This document shows, piece after piece, positions 15,570-62,011 of a stretch of 64,000 nt of DNA. Position 1 is the stretch's first letter, and every line of letters begins with the position of its first letter. The notes beneath the pieces are model-generated. The model did no database searches and was not told the origin of the DNA. It saw only the letters and a list, made by a program, of their open reading frames with translations. The stretch comes from Podarcis bocagei (taxonomy: Eukaryota), in assembly GCA_964188305.1 (NCBI GenBank), contig OZ076885.1; one strand, given 5' to 3'. The translations under genes were made by a program, and so were the position numbers.

Positions 15570-17154
15570 TTTTTTTTTTTATAAGATTTTTATTGGTTTT
15601 GCAAATTTTTTAAAAAACAAACAAACACTTAAGAAAACAAACAAACACGTATAATTTCGTAACATATTTTCATAAACCTCTTTTCTGGGACTTCCCCATA
15701 CCCCCCCTTTCTGCATCCCAATGTCCATAATTTTATAGCAACTCCCAGTTGTTACTTTCCAACCTCAGTCATCTTAGTCCTCTCTATATTCTAACCTTAT
15801 GTCACTGTATCCCTTTGTTCCTAAGAACCAAAACACTCTAGCATTCATTGAGTTTATAATAGTCCTTAAGGTAACTTTTGAATTTTCTCCATTCTTCTTC
15901 CGCTGTCTCTTTTCCTTGGTCACGGATTCTGCCTGTCATCTCGGCCAGTGTCATATAGTCCATCACTTTCATCTGCCATTCTTCCAGAGTGGGTAGATCT
16001 TGTGTCTTCCAATGCTTTGCGATGAGTATTCTTGCTGCTGTTGTAGCGTACATGAAAAAAACTCTATCCTTCTTTGACACCAATTGGCCGACAATGCCCA
16101 GGAGAAAGGCCTCTGGTTTTTTAGGAAAGGTACATTTAAGTACCTTTTTTATTTCATTATAGATCATTTCCCAGAAAGCCTTTATCTTCGGGCATGTCCA
16201 CCAAAGGTGGTAGAAGGTACCTTCAGTCTCTTTGCATTTCCAACATTTGTTATCGGGCAGATGATAAATTTTTGCCAGCTTGACTGGGGTCATGTACCAC
16301 CTGTATACCATTTTCATAATGTTTTCCTTTAAGGCATTACATGCCGTAAATTTGATACCGGTGTTCCATAACCATTCCCAGTCATCTGACATGATGTTAT
16401 GACCAACATCCTGTGCCCACTTAATCATGGCTGATTTGACTGTTTCCTCCTGTGTATTCCATTTCAGCAACAAGTTATACATTCTAGATAAATTCTTAGT
16501 ACTAGGTTCTAACAATTCAGTTTCTAGTTTAGATTTTTCCATCTGGAAGCCAATTTTCCTGTCCTGTTTGAAAAATTCCACTATTTGATGGTATTGAAAC
16601 CAATTTTGTACCTTATGCTTCAGTTTCTCATAACTTTGCAATTTCAACTTATCTCCATCCTGTTCCAAAATTTCCCAATACTTCGGCCATCCGACCTCCA
16701 TATTGAGTTTCTTCACTGCCTTGGCCTCCACTGGTGAGACCCATCTAGGGGTTTTGTTTTCCAACAGATCTTTATATCTTCTCCAAACATTAAACAATGC
16801 TTTTCTAACAATGTGATTCTTAAAGACACTATTAACTTTGTCATACCATAGATATGCATGCCAACCAAAAGCATTGTTAAAACCTTCCAGATCTAAGATG
16901 TCTGTATTTTCGAGGAGCATCCATTCTTTCAGCCAGCAAAATGCTGCTGCCTCATAGTACAATTTCAAGTCCGGCAGGGCAAAACCCCCTCTTTCTTTAG
17001 CATCTGTCAATATTTTAAATTTAATTCTGGGCTTTTTGCCCTGCCAGACAAATTTCGAGATATCTTTCTGCCACCTCTTAAAACATTCCATCTTATCCAG
17101 GATCTGCAAGGTCTGGAACAAAAATAACATTCTAGGCAATACATTCATTTTGAA
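15570..17154 (-). mobile_element. 5'-truncated L1/Tx1-clade LINE with an intact ORF2 C-terminal part
   Basis: ORF 15838-17166 has the C-terminal CCHC knuckle CWKC-x8-H-x4-C. Poly(A) tail appears as a T run at 15570-15580. 17-bp TSD GTCCAGATTCATATTCT (15553-15569 and 17155-17171). The called ORF start lies in the TSD and is spurious. Confidence 0.92.
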
Positions 17155-40319: not shown

Positions 40320-43300
40320 CTAGAGTTTTGTCACTCTGCTTCTCTTTTTCCAGAGTACGATCACAACAACAAACAAGATTACACCCACTAACGGCAGTGC
40401 CACCAAGCATATCAGGGCCAGATCTCCACTGGAGCTCATGTCTGTGGAAAAGAAAAGAGGCTTGCACTTATTTTGCAAGATTTATGTACAACTTAATAAA
40501 AAAAAGAAATCTTAAGTGGTTTCTATAAAGTGGTATAGATAATTTAGAAATAGCAATTAAAACTCTAAAAACAGTAAACATAATAAAACCAGTAGATTTT
40601 TAAAACGTACATGATAAAATTACAAGTTCTGAGTAGGCTTGCTCAAACAAAAACATTTTTAGCAGACATCATAAGCAGTACAGTGAAGGGTCTGCCCAAT
40701 ATCAATAGGCAATAAGTACTTGAGAACAGAACCTAGGAAGCTGCCATACACAAAGACCAAGCATTGGTCCATCCAACTCCATATTGTCTACATTGACTGG
40801 CTGCAGCTCTCCAGGGTTTTAGGCAGGGATGCTCTTCCAACCCTACCTGGAGATGCTAGGGTTTGAACCCAGAACCTTCTGCATGCAAATAAGGTCTGCT
40901 ACTGAGCTAGATCCTTCCCCAGCAAATACTGCTACATGATAAAATGTCATGCCAAGTGCAGAATGAACACTATATGGCACTTGTAAGGGTGATAGTTAGA
41001 GATCAAAGCTGGCACATTTGGGGTATGGCAGTCCTTTGCACCTCCTGAAACACATTTGTGCCATCCATGACTTCCCTAGCCAAGGACCCATGGTATGTTC
41101 TATTGGGACAAAGCTAGTAGAGTGTACTCTGGATAAAATCGCATTTGTGAGACATGGTTTATTATGTGCATGTTCAAGAACTGCAGTGGTTAGGGTAGGT
41201 GCTCACCTGAGCCCATGTTGCTGCAGCTTGTCAGCAGAAAGCAGCATGGTGAGAGCAAATGGTGTGAGTGCACTTTGCTATTGCCCCATGCCCCACTGAT
41301 AAGCCATGGTGCCACTAGCGATGGGAGGGCAGATAAATGCCACGTGCCCTGCCGAGTAGTACTCCTCACGAGCTAAAAAGTTGTGACATTGTTAGGAGGA
41401 CATTGGTAGTCAAGTTTATAATTTGTGACCCCCCACCCCAAGTTTTAGTTGGCTGCTTCAGGCATAAATCCATACAGAGTTTGTATCTTACAAAGGACTA
41501 TATATAAGATGACTGAAATTTAGTGTTGATGGCGAAACTATGTTAATACCTGTTCAAAAATATACAGCATTTTCATCATTTCAACTCACTTACTGGTCCC
41601 ATGAATTATTGCAGTGCCAACCACCAATTACCTTTCTTCCATTTGACTTGTTTATCTTGAGTCTGGCTGCTTTCTTGAAAGATCACACCTCCATAAGTGC
41701 TTACTAGGTCCAAGGTTTCTGTCCCATTGCCCGTCTTCAGAAACCGACGACTTCCTAAAAAGGGAGTTGGAGAAGGAAAGGTATAAACTCTACTAGGCCA
41801 CCTTGTGCCATATACAATTTTGAAGGTAAGAAGGAAAAGGAGCACCGCATTGATCATATTGTTAGAGCTGGAAGCCTGCAGGAGGGCTATGCCCTAGAAG
41901 CCCATTTATACACTCAATGACTAGAGACAGATACAACCCTTTACAAAAAAAGTATTTGCATTCTGAATGCTTTACCCCAGTAAAGAACCAGAGCCAGAGC
42001 CCTACACATCAGGACTGAAGCTTTATTGGGGGGGGGGAGGAGTGTTGCTGAGCCCCAGCATCACATCAGCAGGCCAGCACTGCTAAGTGGAAAGATTCTG
42101 CTGAGATGGAACTTCATTTGAGGTTAGGAGTCAGAGCACCTGGTTGTTGGAGTGTCCTTGTAGATGGGCTATTAGAATTGGTGGTATGTGCCAGCAGCCT
42201 ATTTTCAAGGTTTGTGAAGAGAGGAAATATGCTGTTAAAAATAGCACATAAGAGCCACTTGAACAGGGAGTGTGTTTATCAGGTACCTATTCATTCTTTG
42301 TCTCTAGTTGCAGCCCATCAGCTCTTAGTGCTCTGCATTTATGCCCCCAGTTCCAAGTTCAGTACCAAGATCTATTTTTGTTTACTAGTCATGGGCAGTA
42401 AGTACCAGTTGTGCATGCTGGAAATACTGGTGGCAACCTATCTGGATTCAAATAAGCCTTTTACGGTACGACAGCAAAGCCGTTTGGACTTACTTGCAGC
42501 CACTGGCATTTGACACGTGTTCCTGCAGGGCTGCAGGTGAGAGGGGTGGCAGACAGACACACTGCAGAAGAGGTACACCTAGGAAAGACATTGCATTAGA
42601 TAAGCTTGCTAGCAGAGGAGTCAACCCAAGTCTTCCAAGATATTTTAATAAAATCCTCATGGTCATTGACGTAAACATTTACAAAGTACATTATCTCCTT
42701 ACAGTTAAGGCATAATTCTAAATGCGCATTAATGGGAGTGGGAGGGGAACCTCTGGCCCACGGACCTAATCTTTAAGCTTGCCAAGCCTCCTAGTTTTGC
42801 CCTACTGCCGCTCACCTGACAAGTGAGGGACATGTAAAACATGCAGCAAAGGAACATTAAGAGTGTTCTCCTGACGGTTCCTTTGCCAGCATGGCTTGCA
42901 TTCAAGTAGAATTAAATTAAACACCATTTCAATTTGGCACCGAATGCAAGCTATGGTGCCTAGGGTCAGAACCACTCAGGGACTCTTGACTGCAGCTTAC
43001 AGGGGGATCAGATATCTGCCCAGAGCAAGATAGCTTGCATTTTGAGATAAATTTAAACAGCTGAATTCAGCATTCATCCTACTTCTGCTCATGTGCCACA
43101 GAGCACCTGACTGAAGCTCATGGACCACTTAAGGTCTGCAGACCACAATTTCGGAGCCCTTACTCGAGCTCAGCTGCAGTAGGAATCCTGTCTCTTACCA
43201 ATCCATCCAGCACCATATAATGGGCAGAATCCACAAATGTAAATGTAGCAATGGTGAAACGCTGGTAATGGTCTGGAAACTGCAGCTGAGACGTGGCAGG

Positions 43301-46300
43301 CCCCATAGGAACCATCTGGGTTCTGTAGTTATCGCCTTCAAATGGGCACCTAGGGAAGAGAGGCATTGCCATTTGAGCAGAGAACAGTAGGTGGCCATCC
43401 ATAGAGAGAAACCAGCAGAATTCCTCCTTCCTACTTAACTCACCCATCTATCAGAATTGGCCACTGCAGCTTCTCAAGGGGGTTAGGGGTCGGAGTGGCC
43501 CAGCATTCATGCAGAACCAGAACCAAGGACGGGTCCATTCTCTGCAGGACGCGAACCTCCACATACACAGGGTCTCTCAGTATCTTCACCACAGGATAGT
43601 CTGCATCCGCATAGTAGGAGCTGTAACTGTAGTCTGGGTGCAAGAGGCAAAGCGAAAGTTAGCACCTACATGGGACTTCAGAGGGAGCACTGTTGGAACC
43701 AGAAGCTTTGGAAGCACACCTACCTGTAGCAATACGCAGTTCAAACCGGAGAGGCCCCATCTCGATAACCGGAGCAGGTGTGGGAGGAAAGAAGACTTCA
43801 ACCTGAACTGGCAAGAAGTCAGTGGCGTTGTAGATGCAGCGAGTATTGAGGCTGCATATGGAAGACAGGACAGCGGAATGATGCATAGTCTTGCCATGTT
43901 CAGTAGCCTTGTCACATATCTGAAGTTCTCAAAAGATTCTTACGTTTTCCTGGCCACTTAGGCAGCACATCTTTTTTGATGCGTATATCCCTGTTAACAC
44001 CTCTTTCAAACAATACTGGATGTGACTTAAATTACTGTCTTACAAAAGCACTGTTGATTGAAACCACACTTTTAAAAAAACCACACTTTTCCTCCACGTC
44101 TCATTTTTGAAGCAAGATTCCTCACTTGAGCACCTGAATGATTGTGCTTATGCACCTGAAAAGTAGTTTGCAACCAACAGCTGTTACCCTACTGGAAAAT
44201 CCAAATTACAGTTGTATCTTGGAACTCGAGCGTCTGCTGCAGCTTCTGATTGGCTGCAGGAACTTTCTGCAGCCAATTGGAAGCCACACCTTGGTTTCTG
44301 AACATTTTGGAAGTCAAATGGACTTCAAGAACAGATTCCGTTCGACTTCAACAGATACCTACGTATAGAAGACTGCTATTCAAGCTTAGCGGTGATAGGA
44401 ACAGTAGGCCTGCCCTGATTAGGACCAGCATGACGCCTCTTAGACATAGTCTAGAGAGCAACCACCACCTCAGTAATGCGTGGGAGAGATCAACTTACAT
44501 GAAGGTGCTGTCCCGGGTAATAAAACCATCTGGCCCCCTTAAGATTTCAACACCCGAAACCAACTGGTTTTCATATATCAGTCTGCCACCAGTCATCTAG
44601 GAAGGAACAGCAGCACATGTATAATTCTTTTTATCAAGCTTCAAGGTCCAGATGAAGGGACACTCGCCTAAGATGCGTCCTCACCTGAATCGTCGTACCA
44701 CAGTGTGTGAGAGGGAAGTGGAAGACCAAGAAAGACTCCGTTTTTCTGACAGGGTCACATCCTCCTTGGGCATAGGACAGTTTGACACTGTCAAGGAAGA
44801 TGGGGTAGTCCAACATATCCCTGGAGACAACCAGAATGAAGTGGCCATCTCGAAGGCATTGGACAGTGACTGCAAAGCACAAACACAAGAGTCACAAGCT
44901 GGAATTTGCCATCTTTTGCAGAACCTGAAACTTAAGTTTCAAAAGAAATATGAGCTTTCTGTCTTCTTGCACAAATCTGGGGCAGGCTCTATTCGGATTA
45001 AGGGGAGAACTTCATTTTTCAGCTGCCCTAAAATGTCAGGAGACAAGTTCTCTATTTGCTGCTAAGTCACACAATTCCTATTAGGAAATGCTCACAGGAC
45101 TTGGTTTCTCCATATGAATCAATATACAATTGACACTGCCAGTAGAGGAAGAATTGGTTTCCAGGGACAGAGAGAGCCCTAACCGTGACAGCTCTAGATA
45201 CTGTGAACCTGCAGCATGAGCCCAGGTTCACAGGTTGCACCATAGCCATATTAAGCTGTCCACTGAATTGCAACATCACATTTCTCCAGACGATGGACAT
45301 GCAATGGTACACAATTTGTTTTCAGAATTTTATACCTTCAGACATCGCTTTGTACACCAGCTTGTTAAAGTTATACACACAGCAGTGTTACAATTGCACC
45401 ATTGCCCACCGAAAAATAAAAATAAAATTAGTCCTTCAAGGGGGGAAAAACAGCAGATACAGGAGACAAGAAAGGGGAAAGAACAATAAAAAATATTCTT
45501 CAAATCCCTTCCCTCAGGATATGGTCTCCATATCCTGCCATGCCTATGTGTGGAAGGTACTGTTTTATGTTTTTCTGAGATGGACCATGGCTTTCTGTGT
45601 TTGGGAGGCAAGAGGAGGGGTAGAATCTGGAATTTGGAGGCAACTCTCCCCCTCTGTCTATCTGGCTGTTTTTGGCCCTGGTGAGATGCTCCTCAGAGGG
45701 GTGGTGGTTCTCTGGTGGGGTAACCACACACAATTTTTGAAAATGTGTCTTTGGCAAAATGGGTAAAAAACCCCACATGCTGTTCAATTAATTAACAACA
45801 ACCCCACACATTTGGGCTACTGTGAAACATGCTTGTTTGGTAGAGGTCTGTTGTTGCACAATTTCACAGACAAAATATTTGTTTATAAAATATCTGCATG
45901 CATGCCCCAAATGACCTGAGATTTCTAGAGCTTCCAGAGAATGAATGAATCTTTATTTGCATCAGCCACCAGCCATAGCAATAAAACATACAATACGATA
46001 TACAAAGGGAGCAGGAAGTAGAAACAGAGGGAACCCCATTCCACAGCACAAATGAATCCCTTCAAGCAGAGTTTAGAACCCTGAAGAGCCTGGAATGGGA
46101 AGGTAACTCAAAGTAACCCCAGCTAGCATGGTACCCCACTTAATAAGGACCAATTTAGATGTTCTTATTGTGCAGTCATGATGATTTACACTCATGATGC
46201 TACTGGAGCAGTCACATGCAGCCCAGCTTTCAATACTATTTGTGCCAAACAAAAATGTTTGGGGGGGGGGGTAGACAGTCATACTGCTTCATTTGCAATC

Positions 46301-49300
46301 ATTGCATGTCCTATAAATTCCTGTTGAAATCCCGGGTCTCTCTTCATACCATAAATGTTATGAGTTTTGTTGCTGCTTTATAGGCCCCTCCAGACAGCAA
46401 TAATGTGGTAGCATCAGGGAAGCACCACAAAGCAACATGAAACCATCACTAGTGCACTATTATTGTGTCAATAACATGTTACAAAATACACCCGCAATAA
46501 AAGACTAGCCTGGAGGAGCCTTTAAGCAGTACTATACAGTGGTACCTCTGGATGCGAACGGGATCTGTTCTGGAGCCCCATTCGCATCCAGAAGCGAACA
46601 CAATCCGCGTCCGCGGGTGCACGGGTCGCAATTTGCCGCTTCCACGCATGTGTGATGTCATTTTGACTGCATGTGCAAGCGGCGAAACCCGGAAGTAACG
46701 CGCTCCATTACTTCCCCGAAAACACTTATCCCGAAGCTACTTCAACCCGAGGTATGACTGTATAGTATCCTGGTTCGTGATGCTTTGAACTGTGCTGGAT
46801 ACATATTCATCCTGCTAGCCTCTGGATTCTCAGCAGTAGCCAGCACAAGATAGAATCCCAGTGTGGCTTTTAGTGTCAGGTGTATTGAACTCAGCATGGC
46901 TGGGAGTTCATCTGTAGGAGTTTTTAAACCATGATACTGGAGAGGAGTAGTTAGAGTGCTTTGCTCCTCCCCCCAGCCAACCTGCTGTGCTACCTGGAGC
47001 TACGCCATGATTTTGCTTAGCATGACATCTAAATGCAGGCTCATGGTTTCTATTGATCTAGAGAAGACACAAGCGGTAGCCAAGGTTTGTTCCTGGCTTG
47101 CTGCCTGTGGGTTGGGGCAAACCATGAGCCCTGGTTCAGATGCAATGCTAAGCCAAAAGCCATGATTCAGTAGCAGCAGAACAACTAGGGAAGGAGTGAA
47201 TTGGCTGCATTTTTTTACTGTGAACAACCGCTTATACATCCATGCTTAGCCATTGTTTGGTTTAGCATTATATGCAAACCGGGCTATTATTTCCTTAGTA
47301 CAAGAGATAAGTCCCCTTGGTAAATGAATCATTACCATGGTTGCCAGCCTAATTCACCACCAGCACGCCAGACAATTAGCAGGAAACTAAAAGAAACAAA
47401 GTATTTTGCCCTTTACCTGTGTTGCCATAGTAACATGGAGTAGTTTGGTCCCTCTCATCATAACAGCATCCAGTCTGGTAACATTCAGCTTGTCCTAGTG
47501 AACCTGCACAGGGAATCTTTCCAGATGAAACCTGGCACTGCTCCTGCGTTAGAGGAGAACCTGGGAGGGCAAGAAAAGAGCTACAGCGTTACCTGGAGCA
47601 TGATAAAGTATGCCCTATTAGGACTGGCTAGCATGCCACGTTAAGCCAGATTTTAAAATAAGCAATAGCTTGATGTGAATGCGTAGTGGGTCAGTCCCGG
47701 CAATGAACAAGTGGGAAAGCAAGAACAAATATTTTTTTGTGTCCAATGAATCATTAAAGGAAGTAGAATGCTCTTTTTAAAGGAACTAAAGGTCTCTCCT
47801 AGAAGCTTATCAGATATTCAGAGGCAGAAATAGATCACATTCTTCATATACTTGAATCCATGCTTCATCCTTGCCCATGTGGTATAAATATAACACAGTT
47901 TCCCTGACACTCCATATGCGGAATTAGTATGCAATACTAAATCAAGAAAGTCGATGATCAATCAATAGTCTGAATTTTATGAAGAACAACTATTACACAA
48001 TACCCATTACTATTACACAATACCCATCAGTATTATTTACTTAGTTCAGAATGCTTCTGTTTTACTTAACAGCACAGATCACAGAGTTGTGCTTAATGAT
48101 AACATAGCAAAATGATCACATACCTATACTGTAGAGGCCAGAAGGGTGCATGAGGCCAGGATAGAGAGGAGGCACTGGTTGCACAAGGCCGGGCTGAGGC
48201 AGCGGGCGCACTTGGCCAGGCTGAGGCTGAGGAAGCGGGCGCACTTGGCCGGGCTGAGGCTGAGGCATTGCGTGCCCTTGGCCAGGCTGAGGCTGAGGCA
48301 GCGGGCGCACTTGGCCGGGCTGAGGCAGTGGGCGCACTTGACCAGGCTGAGGCTGCACTTCACCAGGCTGAGGCTGAGGCCATGGGTGCACTTGGCCAGG
48401 CTGCGGCGGAGGCCGTGGGCGCACCAGGCCGGGCTGAGGTTGAGGCTGAGGCAGCGGGCGCACTAGGCCGGGCTGAGGTTGAGGCAGCGGGTGCACTTGG
48501 CCGGGCTGAGGTTGAGGCAGTGGGCGCAGTTGGCCGGGCTGAGGCAGTGGGTGCACTTGACCAGGCTGAGGCTGCACTTCACCAGGCTGAGGTTGAGGCC
48601 ATGGGTGCGCTTGGCCGGGCTGCGGCGGAGGCTGTGGGCGCACCAGGCCAGGCTGCGGCTGAGGTTGAGGCAGCGGGTGCACTTGGCCGGGCTGAGGTTG
48701 AGGCTGAGGCAGCGGGCGCACTTGGCCGGGCTGAGGTTGAGGCAGCGGGTGCACTTGGCTGGGCTGAGGTTGAGGCTGAGGCAGCGGGCGCACTAGGCCG
48801 GGCTGAGGTTGAGGCAGCGGGTGCACTTGGCTGGGCTGAGGTTGAGGCTGAGGCAGCGGGCGCACTAGGCCGGGCTGAGGTTGAGGCAGCGGGTGCACTT
48901 GGCCGGGCTGAGGTTGAGGCTGAGGCAGCGGGCGCACTAGGCCAGGCTGAGGTTGAGGCAGCGGGTGCACTTGGCCGGGCTGAGGTTGAGGCAGCGGGTG
49001 CACTTGGCCGGGCTGAGGTAATGGGCGCACTTGGCCAGGCTGAGGCTGAGGCTGAGGCAGCGGGTGCACTTGGCCAGGCTGAGGCTGTGGCAGCGGGCGC
49101 ACTTGACCAGGCTGAGGCTGCCCTTGACCAGGCTGAGGTTGAGGCCATGGGTGCGCTTGGCCAGGCTGCGGCTGAGGCCGTGGGCGCACCAGGCCGGGCT
49201 GCGGCTGCACTTCGCCTGGCTGAGGCTGAGGCCATGGGTGTCCTTGGCTGGGCAGCGGCTGAGGCAGTGGGTGCACCTGGCCGGGCTGAGGCTGAGGTTG

Positions 49301-52300
49301 AGGCAGCGGGCGCACTAGGCCGGGCTGAGGTTGAGGCAGCGGGCGCACTTGGCCGGGCTGAGGCTGAGGTTGAGGCAGCGGGCGCACTTGGCCGGGCTGA
49401 GGCTGAGGTTGAGGCAGCGGGTGCACTTGCCCGGGCTGAGGCTGAGGCAGCGGGTGCACTTGCCCGGGCTGAGGTTGAGGTTGAGGCAGCGGGCGAACTA
49501 GGCCGGGCTGAGGCTGAGGTTGAGGCAGCGGGCGCACTAGGCCGGGCTGAGGCTGAGGTTGAGGCAGCGGGCGCACTTGGCCGGGCTGAGGCTGAGGTTG
49601 AGGCAGCGGGCGCACTAGGCCGGGCTGAGGCTGAGGTTGAGGCAGTGGGCGCACTTGGCCGGGCTGAGGCTGAGGTTGAGGCAGCGGGTGCACTTGGCCG
49701 GGCTGAGGCTGAGGCAGCGGGTGCACTTGCCCGGGCTGAGGCTGAGGTTGAGGCAGCGGGCGAACTAGGCCGGGCTGAGGCTGAGGTTGAGGCAGCGGGT
49801 GCACCTGGCCGGGCTGAGGCTGAGGCAGCGGGTGCACTTGGCCGGGCCGAGGCTGAGGCAGCGGGTGCACTTGGCCGGGCTGAGGCTGAGGTTGAGGCAG
49901 CGGGCGCACTAGGCCGGGCTGAGGCTGAGGTTGAGGCAGCGGGCGCACTTGGCCGGGCTGAGGCTGAGGTTGAGGCAGCGGGCGCACTAGGCCGGGCTGA
50001 GGCTGAGGTTGAGGCAGCGGGCGCACTTGGCCGGGCTGAGGCTGAGGTTGAGGCAGCGGGCGCACTAGGCCGGGCTGAGGCTGAGGTTGAGGCAGCGGGC
50101 GCACTTGGCCGGGCTGAGGCTGAGGTTGAGGCAGCAGGTGCACTAGGCCGGGCTGAGGCTGAGGCAGCGGGTGCACTTGCCCGGGCTGAGGAAGAGGTTG
50201 AGGCAGCGGGCGCACTAGGCCGGGCTGAGGCTGAGGTTGAGGCAGCGGGTGCACTTGGCCGGGCTGAGGCAGCGGGTGCACTTGGCCGGGCTGAGGCTGA
50301 GGCTGAGGCAGTGGGCGCACTTGACCAGGCTGAGGCTGAGGCAGTGGGCGCACTTGGCCGGGCTGAGGCTGAGGTTGAGGCAGCGGGTGCACATGGCCGG
50401 GCTGAGGATGAGGCAGTGGGTGCACTTGGCCAGGCTGAGGCTGCGGCTGTACTTCACCGGGTTGAGGCTGAGGCTGAGGCAGTGGGTGCACTTGCCCAGG
50501 CTGAGGCTGAGGCAGCGGGCGCACTTGGCCGGGCTGAGGCTGCGGCTGTATTTCGCCGGGTTGAGGCTGAGGCTGAGGCAGTGGGCGCACTAGGCCGGGC
50601 TGAGGGTGAGGCAGCGGGTGCACATGGCCAGGCTGAGGCAGCGGGCGCACTTGGCCAGGCTGAGGCTGCGGCCATGGGTGCACTTGGCCAGGCTGTGGCT
50701 GAGGCAGTGGGCGCACTAGGCCGGGCTGAGGTTGAGGCAGTGGGCGCACAAGGCCGGGCTGAGGCTGAGGTTGAGGCAGCGGGCGCACTTGGCCGGGCTG
50801 AGGCTGAGGCAGTGGGTGTATTTGGCCAGGCTGAGGCAGCGGGCGCACTAGGCCCGGCTGAGGCTGAGGCAGTGGGTGCACTTGGCCAGGCTGAGGCAGC
50901 AGGTGCACTTGGCCGGGCTGAGGCAGCGGGTGCACTTGGCCGGGCTGAGGCAGCGGGCGCACTTGGCCGGGCTGAGGCTGAGGCAGTGGGTGCACTTGGC
51001 CAGGCTGAGGCAGTGGGCGCACTAGGCCGGGCTGAGGCTGTGGCAGCGGGTGTACTTGGCCGGGCTGAGGCTGAGGCTGTACTTTGCCAGGCTGAGGCTG
51101 AGGCAGTGGGCGCACTTGGCCTGGCTGAGGCCACGGGTGCACTATGCCAGGCTGGGGCTCTGGGCGTATCAGGCTAGGTACTGGATGCTCTAAGCCAGGC
51201 TGGGGCTTAGGCTGGGGCTGCGGGCGCAACTGGCCAGGCTGAGGTTGAGGCTGTGGGCGCACTATGCCAGGTTGGGTTTCTGGGCGTATTAGTCCAGGCT
51301 GCGGTCGCACTATGCCAGGTTGGGTTTCTGGGCGTATTAGGCCAGGCACTGGACGCTCTCGGTCAGGCTGGGGCTGAGGTTGTGGGCGCACCTGGCTGGG
51401 CCAAGGCTGAGGCAGTGGGAACTCTAGGCCAGGCTGGGAATGAGGCAGAGGGCGCGCCGCGCCAGGCTGGGGCTGAGGCACATGACGCATGTTGTCCTCT
51501 GGTGCTGGGACATATTCTTGTGGCTTGGGGCATATTATGTTGACATCATGGGAGACAACAACTCTTCTGTTGCTTGTTAGTTCCTCTATCCGGACTTTCA
51601 AGTTATTGCTGTTATCCTGCAAGATGCATTGAACCAGAATGTTATAGAGTAGTTGCAAGTTTCTGACACATTGATGAGTCAGGACGGATATAGAATACTG
51701 AGGTTTTAGAGTCAAATACCAATGTACCTGTTACAAGGCATTATCATAGTCTTGCTATGACATATGAATCTTGTTTTGATAATAAATTTAAATTTATTTG
51801 GCCGAATACCGACTAAGCTAGTGTACTGGATTGCTAGGTACCAGGTGAAAAGCATCCTCCTAAAACATCTAAAAGCTCATCTTAAATGTCTATACAACAG
51901 AGCTAATTTTCCTGACAGAGGATTTCTGCTGCAGTAGTTGGCCAAGATGATGGGCAGGATACAACTAAGCGGTGTGCATGGCATGAGGTCCAATTACTCA
52001 ACAGGACTTTGCCTGCGCTCCTTCCCCTCGTGGATCTTGTTCCCCTTGGGCTTCACTGAGTTCTACACCCTGGTTTTAGGCTGTTCAGTTCTCTACTGCA
52101 CATGTTGCTATACTTTGGAAGACAATTCTACCCTTTCTTATACTTGGACTTTCTGCATAGCCAGCTATTTGCAAAATCACTAAAGCAAAAATCAGAAGTG
52201 ACCAGGGAACCTGGTGAACCTGTGCCTCTCAAATGTTGCTAGGTTCCAGAGGTAGCTATAAATGTAAAAACTAAACCCAGCCAGCATGTCTGATGGAAAC

Positions 52301-55300
52301 TGGCAGTCGGGTAACAGGCGCCCTACCCCCAAGTTAGGCCTATTACCTGCCTTACAGCAAGGTTTCCTGAAGAGTGGGCGACTCAAATCCTTGCACAGTC
52401 AAGAAGTTCATGGGCTGACCCTGGGCCAATCACTCCCTCTCAACCTCAAGTACCTTACAGGACTGTTGGAAGAACAGAAGGAGCTGAGAAGATCAGCAGC
52501 CCCTTTCACATGTGCATCACACGTGAAGGGGACTCATACAGAACAGGGCTACTTCTCTGCCTTTGGAGTCCATCTGCCCAAGCTGAACATCTGCAAGCAA
52601 AAGCTTACATTGCTCTTTTCCCGAGTCCTAGAACCCTAAAGAGCCTTTTAATGAGGGTGAAAGAGGAGAGCACAAAATATGGTCTGAAGCTCAACATCAA
52701 AAAAACGAAGATCATGGCCACTGGGCCCATCACCTCCTGGCGAACAGAAGGGGAAGAAATGGAGGCAGTGAGAGATTTTACTTTCTTGGGCTCCATGATC
52801 ACGGCAGATGGTGACAGAAGTCACGAAATTAAAAGACGCCTGCTCCTTGGGAGAAAGGCGATGGCAAACCTAGACAGCATCTTAAAAAGCAGAGACATCA
52901 CCTTGCCAACAAAGGTCCGTATAGTTAAAGCCATGGTTTTCCCAGTAGTGATGTATGGAAGTGAGAGCTGGACCATAAAGAAGGCTGATCGCCGAAGAAT
53001 TGATGCTTTTGAACTAAGGTGCTGGAGGAGACTCTTGAGAGTCCCATGGACTGCAAGAAGATCAAACCTATCCATTCTTAAGGAAATCAGCCCTGAGTGC
53101 TCACTGGAAGGACAGATCGTGAAGCTGAGACTCCAATACTTTGGCCACCTCATGAGAAGAGAAGACTCCCTGGAAAAGACCCTGATGTTGGGAAAGATGG
53201 AGGGCACAAGGAGAAGGGGACGACAGAGGATGAGATGGTTGGACAGTGTTCTCGAAGCTACAAACATGAGTCTGACCAAACTGCGGGAGGCACAGGAGTG
53301 CCTGGCGTGCTCTGGTCCATGGGGTCACGAAGAGTCGGACATGACTAAACGACTAAACAACAGAACCCTAAACATGCTCTCAGAAGGGCTGCTTATACAA
53401 TTCCCCTGAGGTCTTAAGGGCACAATCCAGATGTCCATATAAAATTATATTGCGTTATTCAGAATGACAATGTTGGCCATGCAGTATAGGGTTTCCAGGG
53501 AAGCCTGCAACACAAAATCCAGAAGAGCCTCACCTTATTTAGTACGTGACAGCCACCGTAGCCAGCAGAGAAAGCAATAGCCCCATTAGATGTGATCCAG
53601 TGGCGGCAGATTGAGCAATTCGAAACTTCAAAGGCTATCCCAAACTCATCTGTTGATGAGAGGTTAATTCATTAGCCACCAAGAGATGCAACAGCTCAAG
53701 AAAACTTATTTGCATTGGTTAAGACTTCTAAAGTTCTTCAGATGTGTGTCCCTTATTATCAGTTAGTGCCTGAAACACACACAAAGAATGTGAACTTTTC
53801 ACTTGCTTTGATATCCAATAATAAGGCCAATTCAAGAGCTACGCCTCCAACAACAGGTGCTAGACCAGGCACCCCCAAACTCAGCCCTCCAGATGTTTTG
53901 GGACTACAACTCCCACCATCCCTAGCTAACAGGACCAGTGGTCAGGGATGATGGGAATTGTAGTCCCAAAACATCTGGAGGGCAGGTTTTGGGGTGCTTG
54001 TGCTAGACCAACATGTTCATTACTGCTGCAATTCTTTCAGTGAGTATTCCCCATAGGACCAAGGAAAAACATTTTACAATAGTTAATATGCCTGTTAACT
54101 TGAGAGGGGACTCTGCTGGAATTCATATGTGCCAACAATTGCAGGCTTAATCAGATGCCAGACTAAGGCCACATTCACACCATACATTTAAAGCAGAATC
54201 ATACTGCTTCCCATCCTCCAAAGAATACTAGGAACTGTAATTAAGCGTGCTGAGAGTTGCTTGGAGACCCTTCCAGAGCTACAGTTCACAGAGTAGTTGA
54301 TCAATCCTTCTTCACAGAGAACTCTGGAAATTTTAACTCTGATGGGACTAGGGGGTACCTTAACTCTACATGCCCTTAAACTACAGCTCCCAGGATTCTT
54401 TGGGGGAAGAAGCCATGGCTGTTTAAAGTGGCATACTGCTGCTTTAAATGGGAAGTGCAGATAGAGCCTAAATTATCCTGTTAAGTCTCCTAATTTTTTT
54501 AACAAGTAGAACAATTGTCTTAAAACAAGCTTTTTAATAAAGCCTAGTTTGGGGAGAATGTTTGCCGTTCTTTGAGTTTCTATTCTCACCACCACGCCCT
54601 CCAAGCCTTAGCTCTAGCCACACGTACAGGAACTGCAACTCTCCCCGTGGCCTCTCCAGTTTCACAGCTTTGAGCATTTTCTTCAACTAAACTAAACCTT
54701 CTCATTCTAGATATGGATATCCAAAACCATGCAAGAGAAAAGCTGCCATTGCCACAAAGCTGTCGCAGCCTAACACAAAGGAGGTGCCTGGCAAGGAGCA
54801 TCACTCCCATTACAAGGAGTGTGGGGGATTCTGAAGTGCTCCACTGAAGCAACACAGCTTTAAATACAGCTGAGCAAGGCAGCTGCTGCAGCATTTTAAA
54901 AAAAATAGTACTGTGGGATTTAATGGGAGCTAAAAGCCTGCAGCTTCTATAGCTTGCCAGAAATCTTTTTTCTTGGTCATTTAGACGACCAGAATAAGAG
55001 GGCAACTACATACCTCTGCTTCCCTGTGACCTCTTCCTTTGAGAGGTTACTGAATCCCCTCTCCCTGGTCAGTACTAACAAAGAACATACAGAGACCTGC
55101 AGTTTGGCATCCACCTTCCAAAGAACCATTCTGCCATAGGTAAGCATAAAGCAGGGGTCCTACCACTCCAACCTTTTAAGACCCAGAGACACATTTGAGA
55201 AGCCAAGGAACTGTTGTGGGCACCACAAAAAAATGCCCATTTCAGAGGAAAGACTGGCAACGCTGGAGAAACTCTCCCCAAAGTGGAAGACACCTACACA

Positions 55301-55766
55301 CACCTCAAAACAAATCAAACAAAAATGCAGGCAGCCATTCCACCAAATAACCTTTCCAAACCCTCACAATGAAGACATAATAAAAATAAATTGAGAGTGG
55401 CGGGAGACTTGGCAGACACCAAGGGAGGCACAGTGGGACCCCACTGAGGAGCCCAGATAACGTTTCAAGAAGTTCCCCTATATTTCATGCCCCAACAAAC
55501 ACACACACCTGACCCACCCCCCTTCTTTCTAACAGACCAGACTTATTCTTTCTTCAAGAGGAAAGAGAGCCTTCCTTACCCACAACTTTAAAGCGGACAT
55601 CTCGGCCTGGGCTAGGAAACACAAGCAGCTGCATGCTGTACTCCCCACAGTTGTAATGATATGGGGAGGGTAAGGAGCCCACCCTCCAAACGTCACCTTG
55701 CCCTTGGCACAGCCCCAGAATCAACAAGATTGCTAACCCCCCCAAATCTCTGAAGCCCCAGTCCAT
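40320..55766 (-). CDS. ZP1: Zona pellucida sperm-binding protein 1, ~1673 aa, 12 exons (signal, ZP-N1, giant P/Q repeat, trefoil, ZP module, furin site, TM)
   Basis: Exons 55766-55580, 53649-53534, 51616-48124, 47560-47417, 44869-44685, 44596-44499, 43851-43724, 43633-43444, 43349-43199, 42578-42494, 41754-41632, 40441-40320. All GT-AG and phase-compatible; total 5022 nt. Motifs: [27 protein letters not shown], trefoil with GCCY...[32 protein letters not shown], furin site [39 protein letters not shown] at 40297-40292. Confidence 0.95.
40725..40925 (-). mobile_element. tRNA-derived SINE (Squam3-like), degraded
   Basis: Reverse complement shows a tRNA-like head with a GGTTCAAACCC B box. The family name is from recollection only. 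Confidence 0.45.
46537..46760. mobile_element. Tigger-like MITE
   Basis: Ends TA|CAGTGGTACCTC and GAGGTATGACTG|TA. Confidence 0.75.
48170..51480 (-). repeat. Coding minisatellite in ZP1 exon 3: (QP)1-3-G-(Q/L)-V-(R/H)-P-L-P units of 27/33/39 bp
   Basis: Visible in the DNA and in ORF 48116-51715; the frame is open across ~3.3 kb. Confidence 0.97.
52641..53361 (+). mobile_element. 5'-truncated BovB (RTE clade) LINE in ZP1 intron 2
   Basis: Encodes the BovB RT C-terminus ([46 protein letters not shown]). CAAC-type tail. 11-bp TSD AGAACCCTAAA (52630-52640 and 53362-53372). Short BovB tails also at ~642-680 and ~4708-4795 (-). Confidence 0.92.
53866..54000. mobile_element. Palindromic hAT MITE
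   Basis: 8-bp TSD TGCTAGAC (53858-53865 and 54001-54008); long internal inverted repeat. Confidence 0.85.
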
Positions 55767-55960: not shown

Positions 55961-57261
55961 AAACCCGGCCAAAAGAGAAAACGCCTCTGCTCTCCCAACA
56001 GTAATCTCTCTTCCACTTGCTCTGAATGGACACGAGGCAGCAGAAATCGAGAAAGACTTGTTCTTCCCCCCCTTTTTTTGTCACATTTGTACCCCCCTCT
56101 TCATCCAAAAAAGCTCCCAGACCAGCCTTCAGACAGTCAAAACAAGACAGTCCCTATACACCAGCTTGCAAGCCCCACCCCCTCCAAAAAAACTCCCCAA
56201 AAGAAAACACGACATGCAAAGAGAAGGAGACGAGGATGGTTCAAGTCCTGTGAACACTTATGTACTTGGGACTCAATCGATCTCACTGAATATAATGGGT
56301 CCTATATCAAGAGTTCCCAGGTGATAGCTGCCCTTTCCTAATTTTCCATCCACCTGATTGCCCTTCTGTTTTTATCTTTTGCCCCTTGTTCTTCCTTCAC
56401 CTCTTTCCTTCTGCTTCACTCTTCTTTTTGAGATTTCATCCTTGCCCTTCCTGGCAGGACTCTTGTGTCTTTAAGGGATGTGGGAATGGGGAAGCAGGAG
56501 CTTTACCTATACCCCTCCCCCCAAACCCCCCCCCACACACATTGGTTAAAGCTTCTTCTGTTGCACCCCTTACTGTTACACAGCAGATAAAGACAATGGA
56601 ACCCTGATGGGAAAATAGGTTTGCCAAACCAATTTTATTCTGAGATTCCCCACCATTTTACACTTTTCCACAGAATGTGGCTTATAATAGGTTTTCGAGT
56701 GAAGCTTGGTTCTTTCCCTTGAACCCGCACTGCTTAAATCCAAAAGCAAGTACTGTCAGAAAACACAGCAGACTCCGCTCATTTGATGATTGTTTGGGAT
56801 GTCCTCCTTTCATTCATTCATGTTGTAGTGTGAGGTTCTATTAACCGAATAGTCCTTGTTTTGCCTTTGAGGACATTCCTGGAGCCAGTGATGTGCCTCT
56901 GCTATGGAAGTGGCAGGACCGAAGGCAGGGATGTTGTCTGGTTCTTAAAACACTTAGGGCAGTGAAATATACTCAGAGTCGCAAAGTGATTTCGTGCTCT
57001 TTATTCAGCTCATAGTGGTGAGGAGGAATGAATGAAAGCCCCCTCAAAGTATCTGCTTATATACATTATTTACACAATGGGCTGCACATGATTGGTTAAT
57101 TCTGGAATTCTACTGTAAGCCAATCAGGTTGTGGATTCACTTATATCTGGAGCATGATTGGGTGGTTCCTGCCAACCAATCATACTGCTGCATTGTTCTA
57201 GGACCAATCAGACTGCTGCAGTTTGGATCCTAGTCAACTCAGAACATAACACCCCTCCCCT

Positions 57262-58870
57262 CTAAGTTCCAGTCCTGCCCGGGAGGTCGCATTCATAGTC
57301 CTCGAGGTACGCCGGCGGCCTACGTGTGCGTTGCGGCCTGTGGTGTTCCCTGGTCCGGGGTTCAGGTTCTGGCTCGTGTTCCAAGGATGCTGGCTGTGAT
57401 GGGCCTGTTTGGTTTGGCGCAACCGGCTCGCTCAGTCGTGGTTCTGGTTCCGGTGTCCTTTCGGCCTCGCGGGTCCTCTCTGTATTTACTGGTTCTGCCT
57501 CTCCTGCTGGCCCCTCCTGTTCTATGGGCCTCACCGCCCCTCTGTTCCCTTGGGACTCCTCTAACCTTTCCTCCTCCTGGTTTTCTCCTGGGAATCGTCG
57601 CCATATCTGGTCGCAGTGGCGGCGCCAGCATTGCCCCCCATCCGTTAGCACCTCGTACGACACAGGGCCAGTGACCCTGGTGACTGTGGCGGGTACCCAT
57701 GCTGGGCCTGCCCCAAAATTCTTTGCGTACACTGGGTCCTGGGCCTCGAAGGTCCGGGGGTTCCTGCCTTCCCCCACCACTACCTCATCCTGAGCTCTAT
57801 CGGGGTGAAGGCGGTCCAATCTGATTGCAAGGCGCCGACCCATTAGTAGTTCAGCGGGGCTCTGGCCAGTCGTTGAGCTGGGGGTGCTGTGCTGTGCTAA
57901 GAGGAATGTGGCAAGGCGGTACTCCCAATCCCCTTGCATCATGCGGCGAAGGGTGTCCTTGGTGGTCCGCACCATGCGTTCTGCTTGGCCATTGGTGGCA
58001 GGGTGGAATGGCGCCGAACGGATGTGGCGGATGGCGTTCTGCGCTGTGAAGGTTTGGAATTCTCCTGACGTAAATGCAGTCCCATTGTCTGAGACGAGAG
58101 TGTCAGGGAGCCCGTGGGTTGCAAACAGCCTGCGTAGTACCCGGATGGCTGCGGATGTAGAAGTGGACGGTACCAGTGCGACTTCCAGCCATTTGGTGTA
58201 GGAGTCCACCACTATGAAGAATGTTTTCCCCTGAAAGGGGCCAGCGAAGTCCACATGCAGGCATGACCATGGTGCTCGGGCGGACTCCCAGGACTGGACT
58301 GGGGCCCTTGGGGGATCTGGGCGGGATTCTTGGCAGGCCTGGCAGTGTTTGACCCAGGCCTCTATCTCTCCGTCGATCCCTGGCCACCACACATAACTTC
58401 TGGCAAGGGCCTTCATTCTTACTACCCCTGGGTGTGTCTCGTGTAGGGCTGTGAGGACCCTTTTGCGGAGGGGCTGGGGAACAACGACCCTGCTTCCCCA
58501 TAACAGGCACCCCTTGTGGGCCGACAGTTCATGTTTGTGGGTTGTGTAGCCAGTGAATTCTGGCCCAGGGCTGCTGCTGGGCCATCCCCTCCACACCCAG
58601 TCCAGGACCCGGGAGATGACCCTATCTTTCTTGGAATGGTATGCAACTTCTTGTGCCTGAATGGGGCGGTCGGGAAGCAGCTCCAGGCTCATAACCTCTT
58701 GTGCAGGTGCTGGGTCGGGGCCTGTTTCCGGTAGTGGTAGCCTGCTGAGGGCGTCCGCATGGCCCATTGCCTTCCCCGGGCGGTGAATCAGTGCATACTG
58801 GTAGCTGGCAAGGAAAATTGACCACCTGAGGACGCGAGGAGACAGCACTTGGGGGGTCTGCTTTTCGGGG
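57262..58870 (-). pseudogene. Gypsy integrase segment
   Basis: HHCC zinc finger (LHETHPG...CQAC), DDE core (HVDFAGP, SDNGTAF, NGQAER) and a GPY/F-like GPVSY module. Confidence 0.9.
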
Positions 58871-60045
58871 GGCAAATAAGCCAAGCAACGGCTTGTGGTC
58901 AGTCACCACGGTGAAGGGCCGCCCGTACAAGAAATCATGGAATTTTTTTACTCCCTTCACGATTGCCAGACCCTCCTTGTCTATTTGCGAGTAGTTCCGC
59001 TCGGTTGCGTTGAGTGTCTGGGAAAAGTATGCCACCGGTACCTCTCTTCCATCCGGGAGTTGGTGTCCCAGGACAGCGCCAATGCCATAGGGCGAGGCGT
59101 CGCATGCTAGCACCACTGGCAGCCTCTCGTCGAAGTGTGCCAAGACCGAGTTTGAGACAAGCAAGTCCTTGACTGCCTGGAATGCAGCCTCCTGGCGCTG
59201 GCCCCACACCCAAGTGGCCCGCTTGTCCAGGAGTCTGTGTAGGGGCTCTGCTACCGCTGCCTTGTGGGGAAGGAAGGAATGGTAAAAGTTCAATAGTCCC
59301 AAGAAGGCCTGAAGTTCAGTCTTGCTCTTGGGCGCTGGGGCATCACAAATGGCCCGTACCTTGTCCCCAGTCGGGTGGACCCCTTCTGCGTCCACCATAA
59401 ATCCCAGAAAGTCCACCTGAGGCACTCCTAGTAGACATTTTTCCCGCTTCACCTTGAGACCCGCCGTCTGGAAACGGTGCAGAACGGTGCGGAGGCGGTC
59501 CTCAAACTCCTCTGGTGTGGGCCCGGCAATCAGCACATCATCGAAGAAGGGGGTGACGCCAGGAATCCCTTTAAGGAGCGAGTCCATTAGATTCTGGAAT
59601 GTGCCTGGTGCCACACTGACACCGAATTGCAGCCGCTTTACCCTGAATGCTCCTCTGTGCGTCACAATCGTCTGTGCCTCTGCTGTGGCCTCATCTACTG
59701 GCAGCTGTTGATATGCTTGGGCCAAGTCCAGCTTGCCAAAAATTTTCGACCCAGCCAGGGTGGCAAGGACATGGCTGACCACTGGCACTGGGTATGCATG
59801 GGCCGTGAGGGCCTTGTTTATGGTACATTTGTAGTCTGCGCAGATGCGGACCGAACCATTAGGCTTGACGGGTGAGACGATTGGGGTTTCCCAGGGGGCA
59901 TTAGGCACTGGCTCCAGCACTCCTTGCTCCACGAGCCGGTCCAATTCCTCGTCTATACGGGGTTTCAGGGCGAACGGGACCCGGCGGGCCTTAAGCCTGA
60001 CCGGTCGTACTGCGGGGTCAAGCTGTAGAGCAATGGGGGGGCCGT
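58870..60045 (-). pseudogene. Gypsy reverse transcriptase / RNase H segment bounded by frameshifts
   Basis: RICADYK, LDLAQAYQQ, LQFGV, FFDD, CDASPYGIGAVL, RNYSQIDKEGLA and TDHKPL motifs. Confidence 0.9.
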
Positions 60046-60228
60046 ATACTGTCCCAATTTCCCATCAAAAACCCCTGGAAATTCCTTGCAGATGGCGTCC
60101 ACGTCCACTTGTAAGGTAGTGTGGTTCACCCCGGTGATGGCTAGCCCCAGTGGTCCAAACCATGCCAATCCCAGTAAGCTAATGTAGGGGCCCTTGACCA
60201 CGAGCAAGTCCAGTTGCCGCGTCCGCCC

Positions 60229-61338
60229 TCAGTATTGCACCCTGAAGGTCCCCACCCCCATTGTGGGGACCTTACGTTTCTGGAAGTCCCGGAGGGTGAA
60301 TGGGGCCGGCCTGAGTTTGGGACCCCCAGTAGGACACAGTTTCCTTAAGGTCCTTGCCGAGATTATGGATAGAGTTGAACCCGTGTGAAGCTCCATGCGG
60401 CATGGGGCCCCCTCTATCTGTACCTCTACATAAATTTTCTCTACATTGGGGTGGGGCAACTGGTATACCTGGAAGTCCGTGAGCTCCGTAGAGTTGCCTT
60501 GGTGCGTTGGGCCCCGGGACCTGGGGCTCTTGGATTGGTCATCTGATGCCTGGCATTGGGTGGGCCGAGCTCGACACACCCGGGTGATGTGTCCCAATTT
60601 TCTGCACTGCCTGCACTCTGCGTTGCGGAAACGGCAGGTCCTCCTCTCGTGACTTTCCCCGCAGCTTGCACAGTTCCCTCCTTCTCGTCGAGGCAGCTGT
60701 GGTATGTGGGCTGCTTGAGTGCGCTGCTGTACTCGGTGCACCTCCTCCCTGTCAGATCCTGAGTCGTCGGTGAGGTCTTCATGGTGGACCCTCGGTTGGG
60801 GTGGCAGGCTCGGCCGTGCCTCTTGCGTCGACCTCTCGGCAGCTTCCGTTGCCAGGGCCTCCTCCAGAGCGACCTGGAACGTTAGGTCCTTCTTGGCGTA
60901 GAGGCGTCGTTGCAGCTTCTCATCCTTCAGGCCACCGACGAGGCGGTCACGAAGCATGTTCTCCAGCTCTGAGAAGTTGCAGAACCGGGCAGCTTGGCGG
61001 AGAGAGGTCACAAACCCAGTTATGGTTTCCCCAGGGGCTTGCCGCTTTGTGTAGAAGGCATTTCGACGAGCCACAACTGAGGGCTGTGGCGAAAAGTGCC
61101 CCTTCAGCTGTTCCATTATTGTTTTGTATGGAACAGTAGCGACGTCTTCAGGTGCAAGGAGAGCCCGGGCGATTTCAAATGTCTCCTCTCCGCAGATGCT
61201 GAAGAATATTGCCCTCTTCTTGGCGTCTTCTTCATCGGTGACCCCTTTGGCTTCTAGAAGGAAGGTGAAACGGGAGGCGTACGCTTCCCAGTCTCCAGAT
61301 GCTGGGTTGAACGGCGAGAAGCTGCTGTTGGTTGCCAT
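60229..61338 (-). pseudogene. Gypsy gag plus protease (premature stop; catalytic D replaced by H)
   Basis: Zinc knuckles CASCGESHERRTC and CRQCRKLGHITRVC. Protease motif reads ELHTGS rather than D(T/S)G. In-frame TGA at 60231-60229, with the frame continuing into ORF 59965-60207. Confidence 0.88.
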
Positions 61339-62011
61339 TCTGAGTTCCTTGTGTCCCGGAGCTGAAGCCTGGATACACGGTGCGAGGCAGCGGTGCGTCA
61401 GGTGGCGGTGCTGCGTGTGGCAGTCAGCTCAGCGGGATCCCATCCTCGTCGCCAGTGAAATATACTCAGAGTCGCAAAGTGATTTCGTGCTCTTTATTCA
61501 GCTCATAGTGGTGAGGAGGAATGAATGAAAGTCCCCTCAAAGTATCTGCTTATATACATTATTTACACAATGGGCTGCACATGATTGGTTAATTCTGGAA
61601 TTCTACTGTAAGCCGATCAGGTTGTGGATTCACTTATATCTGGAGCATGATTGGGTGGTTCTTGGACCAATCAGACTGCTGCATTCTGAATCCTATTGTT
61701 CTAGGACCAATCAGACTGCTGCAATTTGGATCCTATTGTTCTAGGACCAATCAGACTGCTGCAGTTTGGATCCTAGTCAACTCAGTACATAACACCCAGA
61801 GTCTCACAACACAAATCTGAACAATATTTGCATATACTAATTTATATGTACAGAGGCAGATTTAGACTGGTTTTCAGAGCCTCTCTATAACCAACATAAT
61901 TTTTTCAAGTTTTAATAAAAATGTATGTGTTTGTGTGAGAAATGTGAAGCCCCCTGAACCGCTCCCTAACAATACCCTGGCATTAATTAAACTCTTTTAA
62001 TTATTCACATT

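Follow-up and report, generated by a model that had tools for sequence, protein, structure and literature searches.

The 64,000-nucleotide stretch of Podarcis bocagei DNA analysed here (contig OZ076885.1; hereafter the window) contains a complete 12-exon gene for the egg-coat protein ZP1, encoding 1,673 residues, and the segment 48124-51616 on its minus strand is the real and intact exon 3 of this squamate reptile gene. The exon encodes the ZP1 "repeat domain" of sauropsids, built on an ancient PG(L/Q)VRP core, and, though large, it exemplifies a known feature and is neither unique nor a new kind of element. Our overall reading, to which we assign a probability of roughly 70%, is that the repeat domain acts as a non-globular cationic tether and as a ZP1-ZP1 self-association domain. 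What is mildly new is the scale of the array across squamates and the systematic failure of gene annotation at this exon; the type of domain itself is known.

The limits, length (3,493 nt) and complete openness that the first-pass annotation, an earlier reading of the same letters, had given for exon 3 proved exact. Its strand, which had not been stated, is the minus strand, where an open reading frame (ORF) of 1,199 residues spans 48116..51715; a plus-strand reading of the interval was rejected because stops are present. Canonical AG/GT sites bound the exon, with a pyrimidine-rich acceptor (...TTGCAG/GAT) at 51616 and a donor (TATAG/GTATGT) past 48124. The head of the exon (...NLKVR..EEL...ICPKP...) recurs in Varanus, Hemicordylus, Liasis, Crotalus and the geckos, and the donor context at its other end, ...(I/L)G/gta, is common to other squamates. 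Pfam holds no family for the exon 3 product.

Proline (34.8%) and glutamine (23.3%) dominate this product, followed by leucine (9.6%), glycine (8.5%), valine (8.1%), arginine (5.2%) and histidine (4.0%). In absolute numbers there are 271 Gln, 60 Arg and 47 His residues, with 4 Lys, two of them inside the repeat array (residues 137 and 178), and 19 Asp and Glu, which lie mostly in the first 155 residues. The scarcity of acidic residues and Lys described earlier thus stands, while the accompanying statement that Cys is absent needs a small correction: the exon encodes a single Cys at residue 29 (...IICPKP), the last canonical Cys of ZP-N1, which lies outside the repeat, the array itself being Cys-free. 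The exon 3 product has no N-x-S/T sequon. It is strongly basic, as had been proposed, with an isoelectric point of 12 and a charge of +46 at pH 7.4, and since about one unit in two has His, the charge rises to +68 at pH 6. Pro follows 55 of the 60 Arg residues, and in the seven other squamate arrays measured it follows 81-98% of them.

The array comprises 93 cores of the form [G/S]-x-[V/I/G/A]-x-[P/L]-x-P (G-x-V-x-P-x-P type), within the 90-100 units previously estimated and in keeping with the motif (QP)1-3-G-(Q/L)-V-(R/H)-P-L-P proposed at that time. Successive cores are spaced by 11 residues (34 times), 13 (33), 9 (16) or 7 (4), and Tandem Repeats Finder (TRF) reports periods of 33, 39 and 72 nt in the array DNA. 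GQVHPLP (24), GQVRPLP (21) and GLVRPLP (18) are the commonest cores, and exact PG[LQ]VRP occurs 42 times in exon 3. Pro and Gln together make up 58% of the array, and each unit bears one Arg or His. In the unit map the array is diverged; one block, of 78-nt period, is young (Table 1), and a ...HPWP / GEVQPQP / short-unit motif occurs three times. No exact internal repeat in the exon exceeds 191 nt, and the one of that length falls within the young block (repeat offsets at 50135 and 50057).

At core position 4 (for example, across 50947-48200), about half of the units have His in place of Arg. The alternation corresponds to a CGC/CAC difference at a CpG (47 G versus 45 A), and His is likewise raised in the Crotalus array, to 5.1%. 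Such a nearly half-and-half mixture of Arg and His units could give the array a pH- or metal-sensitive charge.

The openness of the array on its own proves little, because the consensus unit lacks stops in all frames; a test of frame therefore rests on the unit variants. Over the whole exon the coding frame contains no stop, as against 31 and 9 in the other two frames of the same strand. Within the array, one of those two frames offers 258 one-step routes to a stop and has 26 stops in 14 distinct contexts, and the other offers 457 routes and has 6 stops in 6 contexts; pooled, this makes 20 independent contexts over 715 routes. The coding frame of the array offers 304 such routes, of which 284 are transitions, chiefly C>T changes at the 271 Gln codons; about 8.5 stops are predicted there and none is seen (Poisson P ~2e-4). 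First-position changes in the Gln codon of the core give Glu six times and Lys four times, and never a stop. We conclude that the exon 3 reading frame is under selection to stay open. The PG(L/Q)VRP core is present in turtles, crocodilians, birds, lizards and snakes, and the NCBI models for Varanus and for copy 1 of Hemicordylus take the entire open exon as coding.

The gene model that surrounds the exon was built from per-exon Pfam searches, tblastn with Varanus and Liasis ZP1 and reading of the junctions, with phases and lengths as its only checks. All 12 coding exons have AG/GT sites, compatible phases and no internal stop, and they sum to 5,022 nt, which reproduces exon by exon the protein of about 1,673 residues (plus stop) that had been predicted. 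Exon 3 lies where it had been placed: ZP-N1, the domain of disulfide cross-linking, precedes it, and the trefoil domain and the polymerising ZP module follow. On this position Pfam, tblastn and exon phases agree. On its own, exon 1 matches the Pfam family ZP1_ZP4_Ig-like (PF22821) at E 5e-5, under the cut-off. Exon 2 aligns to the chicken ZP1-N1 structure (PDB 6GF6, E 5e-13) and retains not just the NCSIC motif reported at first but the whole chicken-type N-C-S-I-C-x-H-W: window N-C-S-I-C-R-H-W aligns with chicken N-C-S-I-C-M-H-W, that is, N65-C66-S67-I68-C69-x-H71-W72. In chicken ZP1, N65, C66, S67, I68, H71 and W72 have been assigned roles as sequon, cross-linking Cys and supporting residues (PMC6626044). 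The furin-type site and transmembrane segment were assigned by direct reading of the sequence. No database ZP1 exceeds about 80% identity to the window in the ZP-module exons. The gene is ZP1 and not ZP4, because the PRPF19/TMEM109 neighbourhood, which we take to be that of ZP1 in human, is kept; the pairing of ZP1 with PRPF19 is found likewise in Varanus, Pituophis and Heteronotia. A single ZP1 copy is seen in the window, whose end lies 8 kb upstream of exon 1.

The sequence features that characterise the sauropsid repeat domain are found in exon 3: tandem, P/Q-rich PG(L/Q)VRP units between ZP-N1 and trefoil, in an array free of Cys and sequons. The repeat domain of chicken and quail ZP1 (Bausek et al. 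2000; PMC4475693; PMC6626044) belongs to the same gene and occupies the same position between ZP-N1 and trefoil. Chicken ZP1 shares with the window a PG(L/V)(L/V)RP-type core (its 24-residue units contain PGVLRPG / GLVRPG), the lack of Cys and N-glycan sites, a variable copy number and an identical ZP-N1 cross-link motif. It differs in scale and composition, with about 375 residues, 24-residue units and a Pro plus Gln content of some 26-30%, whereas the window array has about 1,100 residues, units of 7-13 residues and a content about twice as high. No other domain of chicken ZP1 shows strong binding to ZP1; the repeat domain is exposed at the surface, and its copy number is variable (Okumura et al. 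2015, PMC4475693). The binding and the exposure on the fibril surface are known from far-Western and immunostaining experiments. According to Nishimura et al. (2019, PMC6626044), reptilian homologues keep a P/Q-rich repeat as well.

Other squamate ZP1 genes carry the orthologous exon with the same head and donor context, and with PRPF19 adjoining. The Varanus and Hemicordylus arrays share the PG(L/Q)VRP core with the window and set it in a unit context of their own; the gecko unit reads AQPQPGLGRPVP. Snake ZP1 is built instead on an 18-residue double unit of the GESQPGLVRP(I/G)QPGQVRP type, with a Pro plus Gln content of only 34-38%. The window differs from the other squamates in its many Gln-for-Leu and His-for-Arg units (GQVHPLP). 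In mammalian ZP1, too, a flexible linker joins the cross-linking ZP-N1 to the filament core, but it is estimated at roughly 100 residues and has no PG(L/Q)VRP array, the whole proteins measuring 625-685 residues; the earlier description of a short mammalian linker and an avian repeat is therefore sound. A ZP1/4 homologue of the shark Heptranchias perlo ("mucin-17-like") has a tandem array of some 440-680 residues per copy at the ZP-N1/trefoil junction, but its VDVKPVNATPG-type unit is unrelated, bears N-glycosylation sequons and is neither cationic nor Gln-rich.

How large the window array is by squamate standards depends on what is measured. A word search with exon 3 found 131 proteins of 640-2,037 residues, and among the 120 of these matches listed, all are reptile or bird ZP1-type proteins save P0118, which is unnamed and without ZP domains. 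In annotated proteins the distance from ZP-N1 to ZP-N has a maximum of 771 residues (Varanus) and a median of 467, compared with about 1,230 in the window. The 1.6-fold length outlier that these protein models suggested was rejected once the genomic exons had been read. Because annotations are unreliable at the repeat exon, we measured the homologous exon as an open frame in genomic loci, a measure that includes a few intron-derived residues at each end (an excess of 40 in the window). The open frames span 127 and 138 residues in the two copies of Eublepharis, 303 in Heteronotia, 350 in Paroedura, 624 and 724 in the two copies of Hemicordylus capensis, 738 in Varanus komodoensis, 977 in Liasis olivaceus, 1,069 in Crotalus adamanteus, 1,204 in the window (exon 1,164) and 1,809 in Pituophis catenifer, the longest seen. 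In the Pituophis exon, 88% of positions fall within unique 151-mers, the longest exact repeat measuring 467 nt. No length was taken from the Phrynosoma locus, which has an N gap inside the gene.

The open exon thus ranges from 127 to 1,809 residues across nine other squamates, and the description of the window exon as an "extreme expansion" holds only in part, since snakes have open exons of similar or greater length. Comparable lengths turn out to be largely routine across reptile ZP1. The geckos are the only short group (127-350 residues), and the window array is the longest among the non-snake squamates sampled, exceeded by one snake, on a continuum. The array grows and shrinks by gain and loss of units, through slippage or unequal exchange, giving a length range of more than ten-fold among squamates; the young higher-order blocks inside the window array support such turnover. 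Nothing in the analysis shows an adaptive value for the length that the window array has reached.

Gene prediction routinely shortens or splits the squamate ZP1 repeat exon, or leaves it out altogether. In Crotalus adamanteus the annotation is split into a 982-residue product without domains and a 421-residue ZP module (locus L006, 3605-9824 and 10001-15998). The Pituophis model has only 413 residues and stands beside an exon open for 1,809 (L005, 4667-10093). The models for Liasis and for Hemicordylus copy 2 leave out in-frame stretches of the open exon, 108-1,710 nt long, at GT...AG pairs drawn from the repeat units; for Hemicordylus copy 2 the mapping of model to repeat is ambiguous, and only clean blocks were used. 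In the literature searched we found no description of the size of the squamate ZP1 repeat exon, which is not proof that there is none.

Separately, ZP1 is tandemly duplicated in Hemicordylus capensis (L002, 9161-11032 and 33077-35248) and in Eublepharis (L008, 7051-7464 and 19830-20210). Tandem copies also occur in turtle, alligator and shark models, and public models fuse such copies into one "ZP1". The top database match, a Hemicordylus "ZP1" of 1,628 residues, was accordingly rejected as an equally giant protein, being a fusion of two tandem copies. Other giant "ZP1"-type entries are tandem-copy fusions as well: P0022 (1,450 residues), P0057 of Trachemys (1,195), P0121 of Alligator and P0134 of a shark (2,145).

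With regard to function, the spacer role proposed earlier is supported in so far as the array is probably non-globular: AlphaFold2 (AF2) predicts no secondary structure for the exon 3 product, with a predicted local distance difference test (pLDDT) score of 63 and a predicted template modelling (pTM) score of 0.13. By analogy with what has been modelled for human ZP1, we suggest that the array would form a long flexible tether that links the filament core to the disulfide-bonded ZP1-N1 dimer, and that the length of the tether may set the spacing of the two ZP filaments joined by that dimer. Two arms of about 1,130 residues, at some 0.3 nm per residue, would permit a maximum span of several hundred nm, by our estimate roughly ten times that of the human cross-link. 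By analogy with chicken, the array may in addition serve as a surface-exposed, multivalent domain for non-covalent ZP1-ZP1 association that bundles fibrils.

Several points weigh against this combined tether and self-association role. Both functions are carried over from chicken and human linkers of other unit sequence that are 3-10 times shorter, and an AF2 prediction for one low-complexity sequence is weak evidence. The gene structure was read from DNA alone for this species, and nearly all units contain in-frame GT...AG pairs (94 codons of the exon start with GT and 176 end with AG), making shorter isoforms possible. A scan of the window for oestrogen response elements (GGTCANNNTGACC, at most 1 mismatch) gave 0 hits where 1.9 were expected, a result that is not decisive on liver expression.

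The strongest competing view is that the length of the array is neutral: the linker has only to stay open, soluble and rich in proline, slippage lets its size drift, and its kilo-residue extent has no meaning for the egg coat. We regard this as possible, if rather doubtful. The more than ten-fold range of lengths bears no obvious relation to parity mode in nine species, for the oviparous forms include both Pituophis (1,809 residues) and the geckos (127-350), while Crotalus (1,069) and Hemicordylus (624/724) are viviparous; a sample of nine species is, however, too small for testing any correlate. Copy-number polymorphism in chicken (PMC4475693) also accords with drift. On the other hand, the core motif has been kept throughout the sauropsids, the avoidance of stops shows selection on the sequence, and large arrays persist in several lineages. 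At the opposite pole, array length together with the Arg/His mix would act as an evolving "ruler" that tunes how thick the egg envelope is, how wide its meshes are or how easily sperm penetrate it, an idea that we consider speculative and unlikely to hold.

A further proposal follows from the fish chorion analogy of the first-pass annotation. Teleost choriogenin H/ZPB also has a P/Q-rich, low-complexity region upstream of the trefoil and ZP module in a ZP1/4-type subunit. If the window array were a hardening substrate of this kind, it would act mainly as a Gln donor for transglutaminase-catalysed epsilon-(gamma-glutamyl)lysine cross-links, and might also be a target of hatching or sperm proteases. 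The abundance of Gln noted above fits this proposal, which is compatible with a tether, and donation to Lys residues elsewhere may occur. The fish repeat, however, has a three-residue Pro-Gln-Xaa (PQX) period, is self-cross-linked by transglutaminase and is digested by hatching enzyme, and the PQX repeat has been called a teleost-specific evolution (JBC 2023). In the window array the PQX periodicity is absent, the units having 7, 9, 11 or 13 residues and the DNA periods of 33/39/72 nt; Lys is very scarce, and the array is preceded by a ZP-N1 domain. In fish the cross-links mostly join one repeat region to another and need Lys there, so that Gln donors and Lys acceptors would both be expected within the repeat, which in the window holds only 2 Lys. 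Arg before Pro disfavours trypsin-like cleavage, and the prevalence of Arg-Pro in the product counts against a target for proteases of that type. No report of an envelope transglutaminase in sauropsids was met in the literature covered, in which no search was aimed at that question. The unit lengths and the scarcity of Lys weaken the analogy, and we think it improbable that hardening is the main function of the array.

It has also to be considered whether the mature mRNA drops large in-frame blocks through cryptic GT...AG pairs of the units, leaving a protein much shorter than 1,673 residues or a set of length isoforms. The gapped models of Liasis and Hemicordylus copy 2 and the frequency of GT and AG at codon boundaries in the window exon lend this some plausibility. 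Yet gapped gene models in repeats are a common alignment artefact, the window exon is entirely free of GTRAG donors, the models for Varanus and Hemicordylus copy 1 take in the full exon, and the whole 3.3-kb array is stop-free, which would be needless for a part that is spliced out. We judge this explanation improbable.

Inflation or mis-ordering of the array by assembly, to which tandem arrays are prone, is very improbable, because the array is diverged enough (97.5% of exon positions lie in unique 151-mers, with no exact internal repeat longer than the 191 nt of the young block), the 64-kb window is without N, the frame is kept perfectly over 93 units of four lengths, and arrays of the same order occur in independent assemblies of other squamates.

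Table 1. Coordinates of ZP1 exons, subdivisions of exon 3 and neighbouring genes in the window.
Feature	Coordinates	Strand	Basis or remark
ZP1 exon 1: start codon (ATG 55766), signal peptide, ZP-N1 start	55580..55766	(-)	GT donor, phase 1 out; tblastn
ZP1 exon 2: ZP-N1 core and cross-link motif N-C-S-I-C-R-H-W	53534..53649	(-)	PF22821 E 2.3e-12, above cut-off
ZP1 exon 3	48124..51616	(-)	3,493 nt = 1,164 codons + 1 base; no stop
Exon 3 residues 1-46: ZP-N1 end (...IICPKP) and short acidic spacer	51479..51616	(-)	direct reading
Repeat array, ~93 units (QP)1-3-G-(Q/L)-V-(R/H)-P-L-P, ~1,100 residues	48170..51478	(-)	unit map, TRF
Youngest higher-order block: alternating 13-residue GLVRPLP/GQVRPLP units, 78-nt period	49870..50135	(-)	lower bound approximate
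Exon 3 tail, into trefoil exon	48124..48169	(-)	ends with first base of Gly codon
ZP1 exon 4: trefoil (P-type) domain	47417..47560	(-)	PF00088 E 9e-6, above curated cut-off; acceptor and phase
ZP1 exon 5: ZP-N of ZP module	44685..44869	(-)	PF23344 E 1.4e-9
ZP1 exon 6	44499..44596	(-)	tblastn, splice sites, phase
ZP1 exon 7: interdomain linker and ZP-C start	43724..43851	(-)	tblastn, phases
ZP1 exon 8: ZP-C	43444..43633	(-)	PF00100 E 7e-19
ZP1 exon 9: ZP-C	43199..43349	(-)	PF00100 E 4e-4, under curated cut-off alone; tblastn
ZP1 exon 10	42494..42578	(-)	tblastn, phases
ZP1 exon 11; with exon 10 end gives furin-type R-S-R-R	41632..41754	(-)	split codon AGA then SRRF...; tblastn
ZP1 exon 12: transmembrane segment, short basic tail, stop codon	40320..40441	(-)	hydrophobic segment, direct reading
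PRPF19 exon, convergent with ZP1, downstream	31151-31660	(+)	Prp19 domain E 3e-20
BRI3BP/TMEM109-family ORF, beyond PRPF19	19554-19895	(-)	E 2e-32

Other elements of the window lie around the gene. A long terminal repeat (LTR) retroelement (56960-61664, minus strand) lies upstream of ZP1, about 1.2 kb from the start codon; its direct repeats (56960-57171 and 61453-61664) are 99% identical, so that the insertion is young. Its internal ORFs comprise 60232-61428 (no Pfam match, in a gag-like position), 58625-60064 (reverse transcriptase and RNase H) and 57265-58902 (integrase), the last two overlapping in different frames. The element might influence the promoter of ZP1. A 119-nt tandem repeat (36380-36710; 2.8 copies, 94% identity), located between PRPF19 and the 3' end of ZP1, has a unit that looks internally palindromic. 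A 442-residue ORF at 15838-17166 (minus strand) has no Pfam match and by eye resembles the C-terminal part of ORF2 of a long interspersed nuclear element. Finally, a GC-rich block at 4891-6113 on the minus strand (74% GC at 5001-6000) gives weak matches to SIX1_SD, the SIX homeobox N-terminal domain, in two frames, both under the Pfam cut-off; it may represent exon 1 of a SIX-like gene, or else a copy that is frameshifted or has become a pseudogene.

These findings have implications for how ZP1 is compared among reptiles. Protein lengths in databases badly under-describe the ZP1 repeat domain, and comparisons built on them mislead; the window exon provides a clean, gap-free and fully open example of the array. 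Were array length indeed to act as a ruler, squamates would form a natural series for testing the effect of the ZP1 linker on egg-coat architecture. In this family the linker of an egg-coat cross-linker varies more than ten-fold among related species while one short core is kept, a natural experiment on tether length and multivalency.

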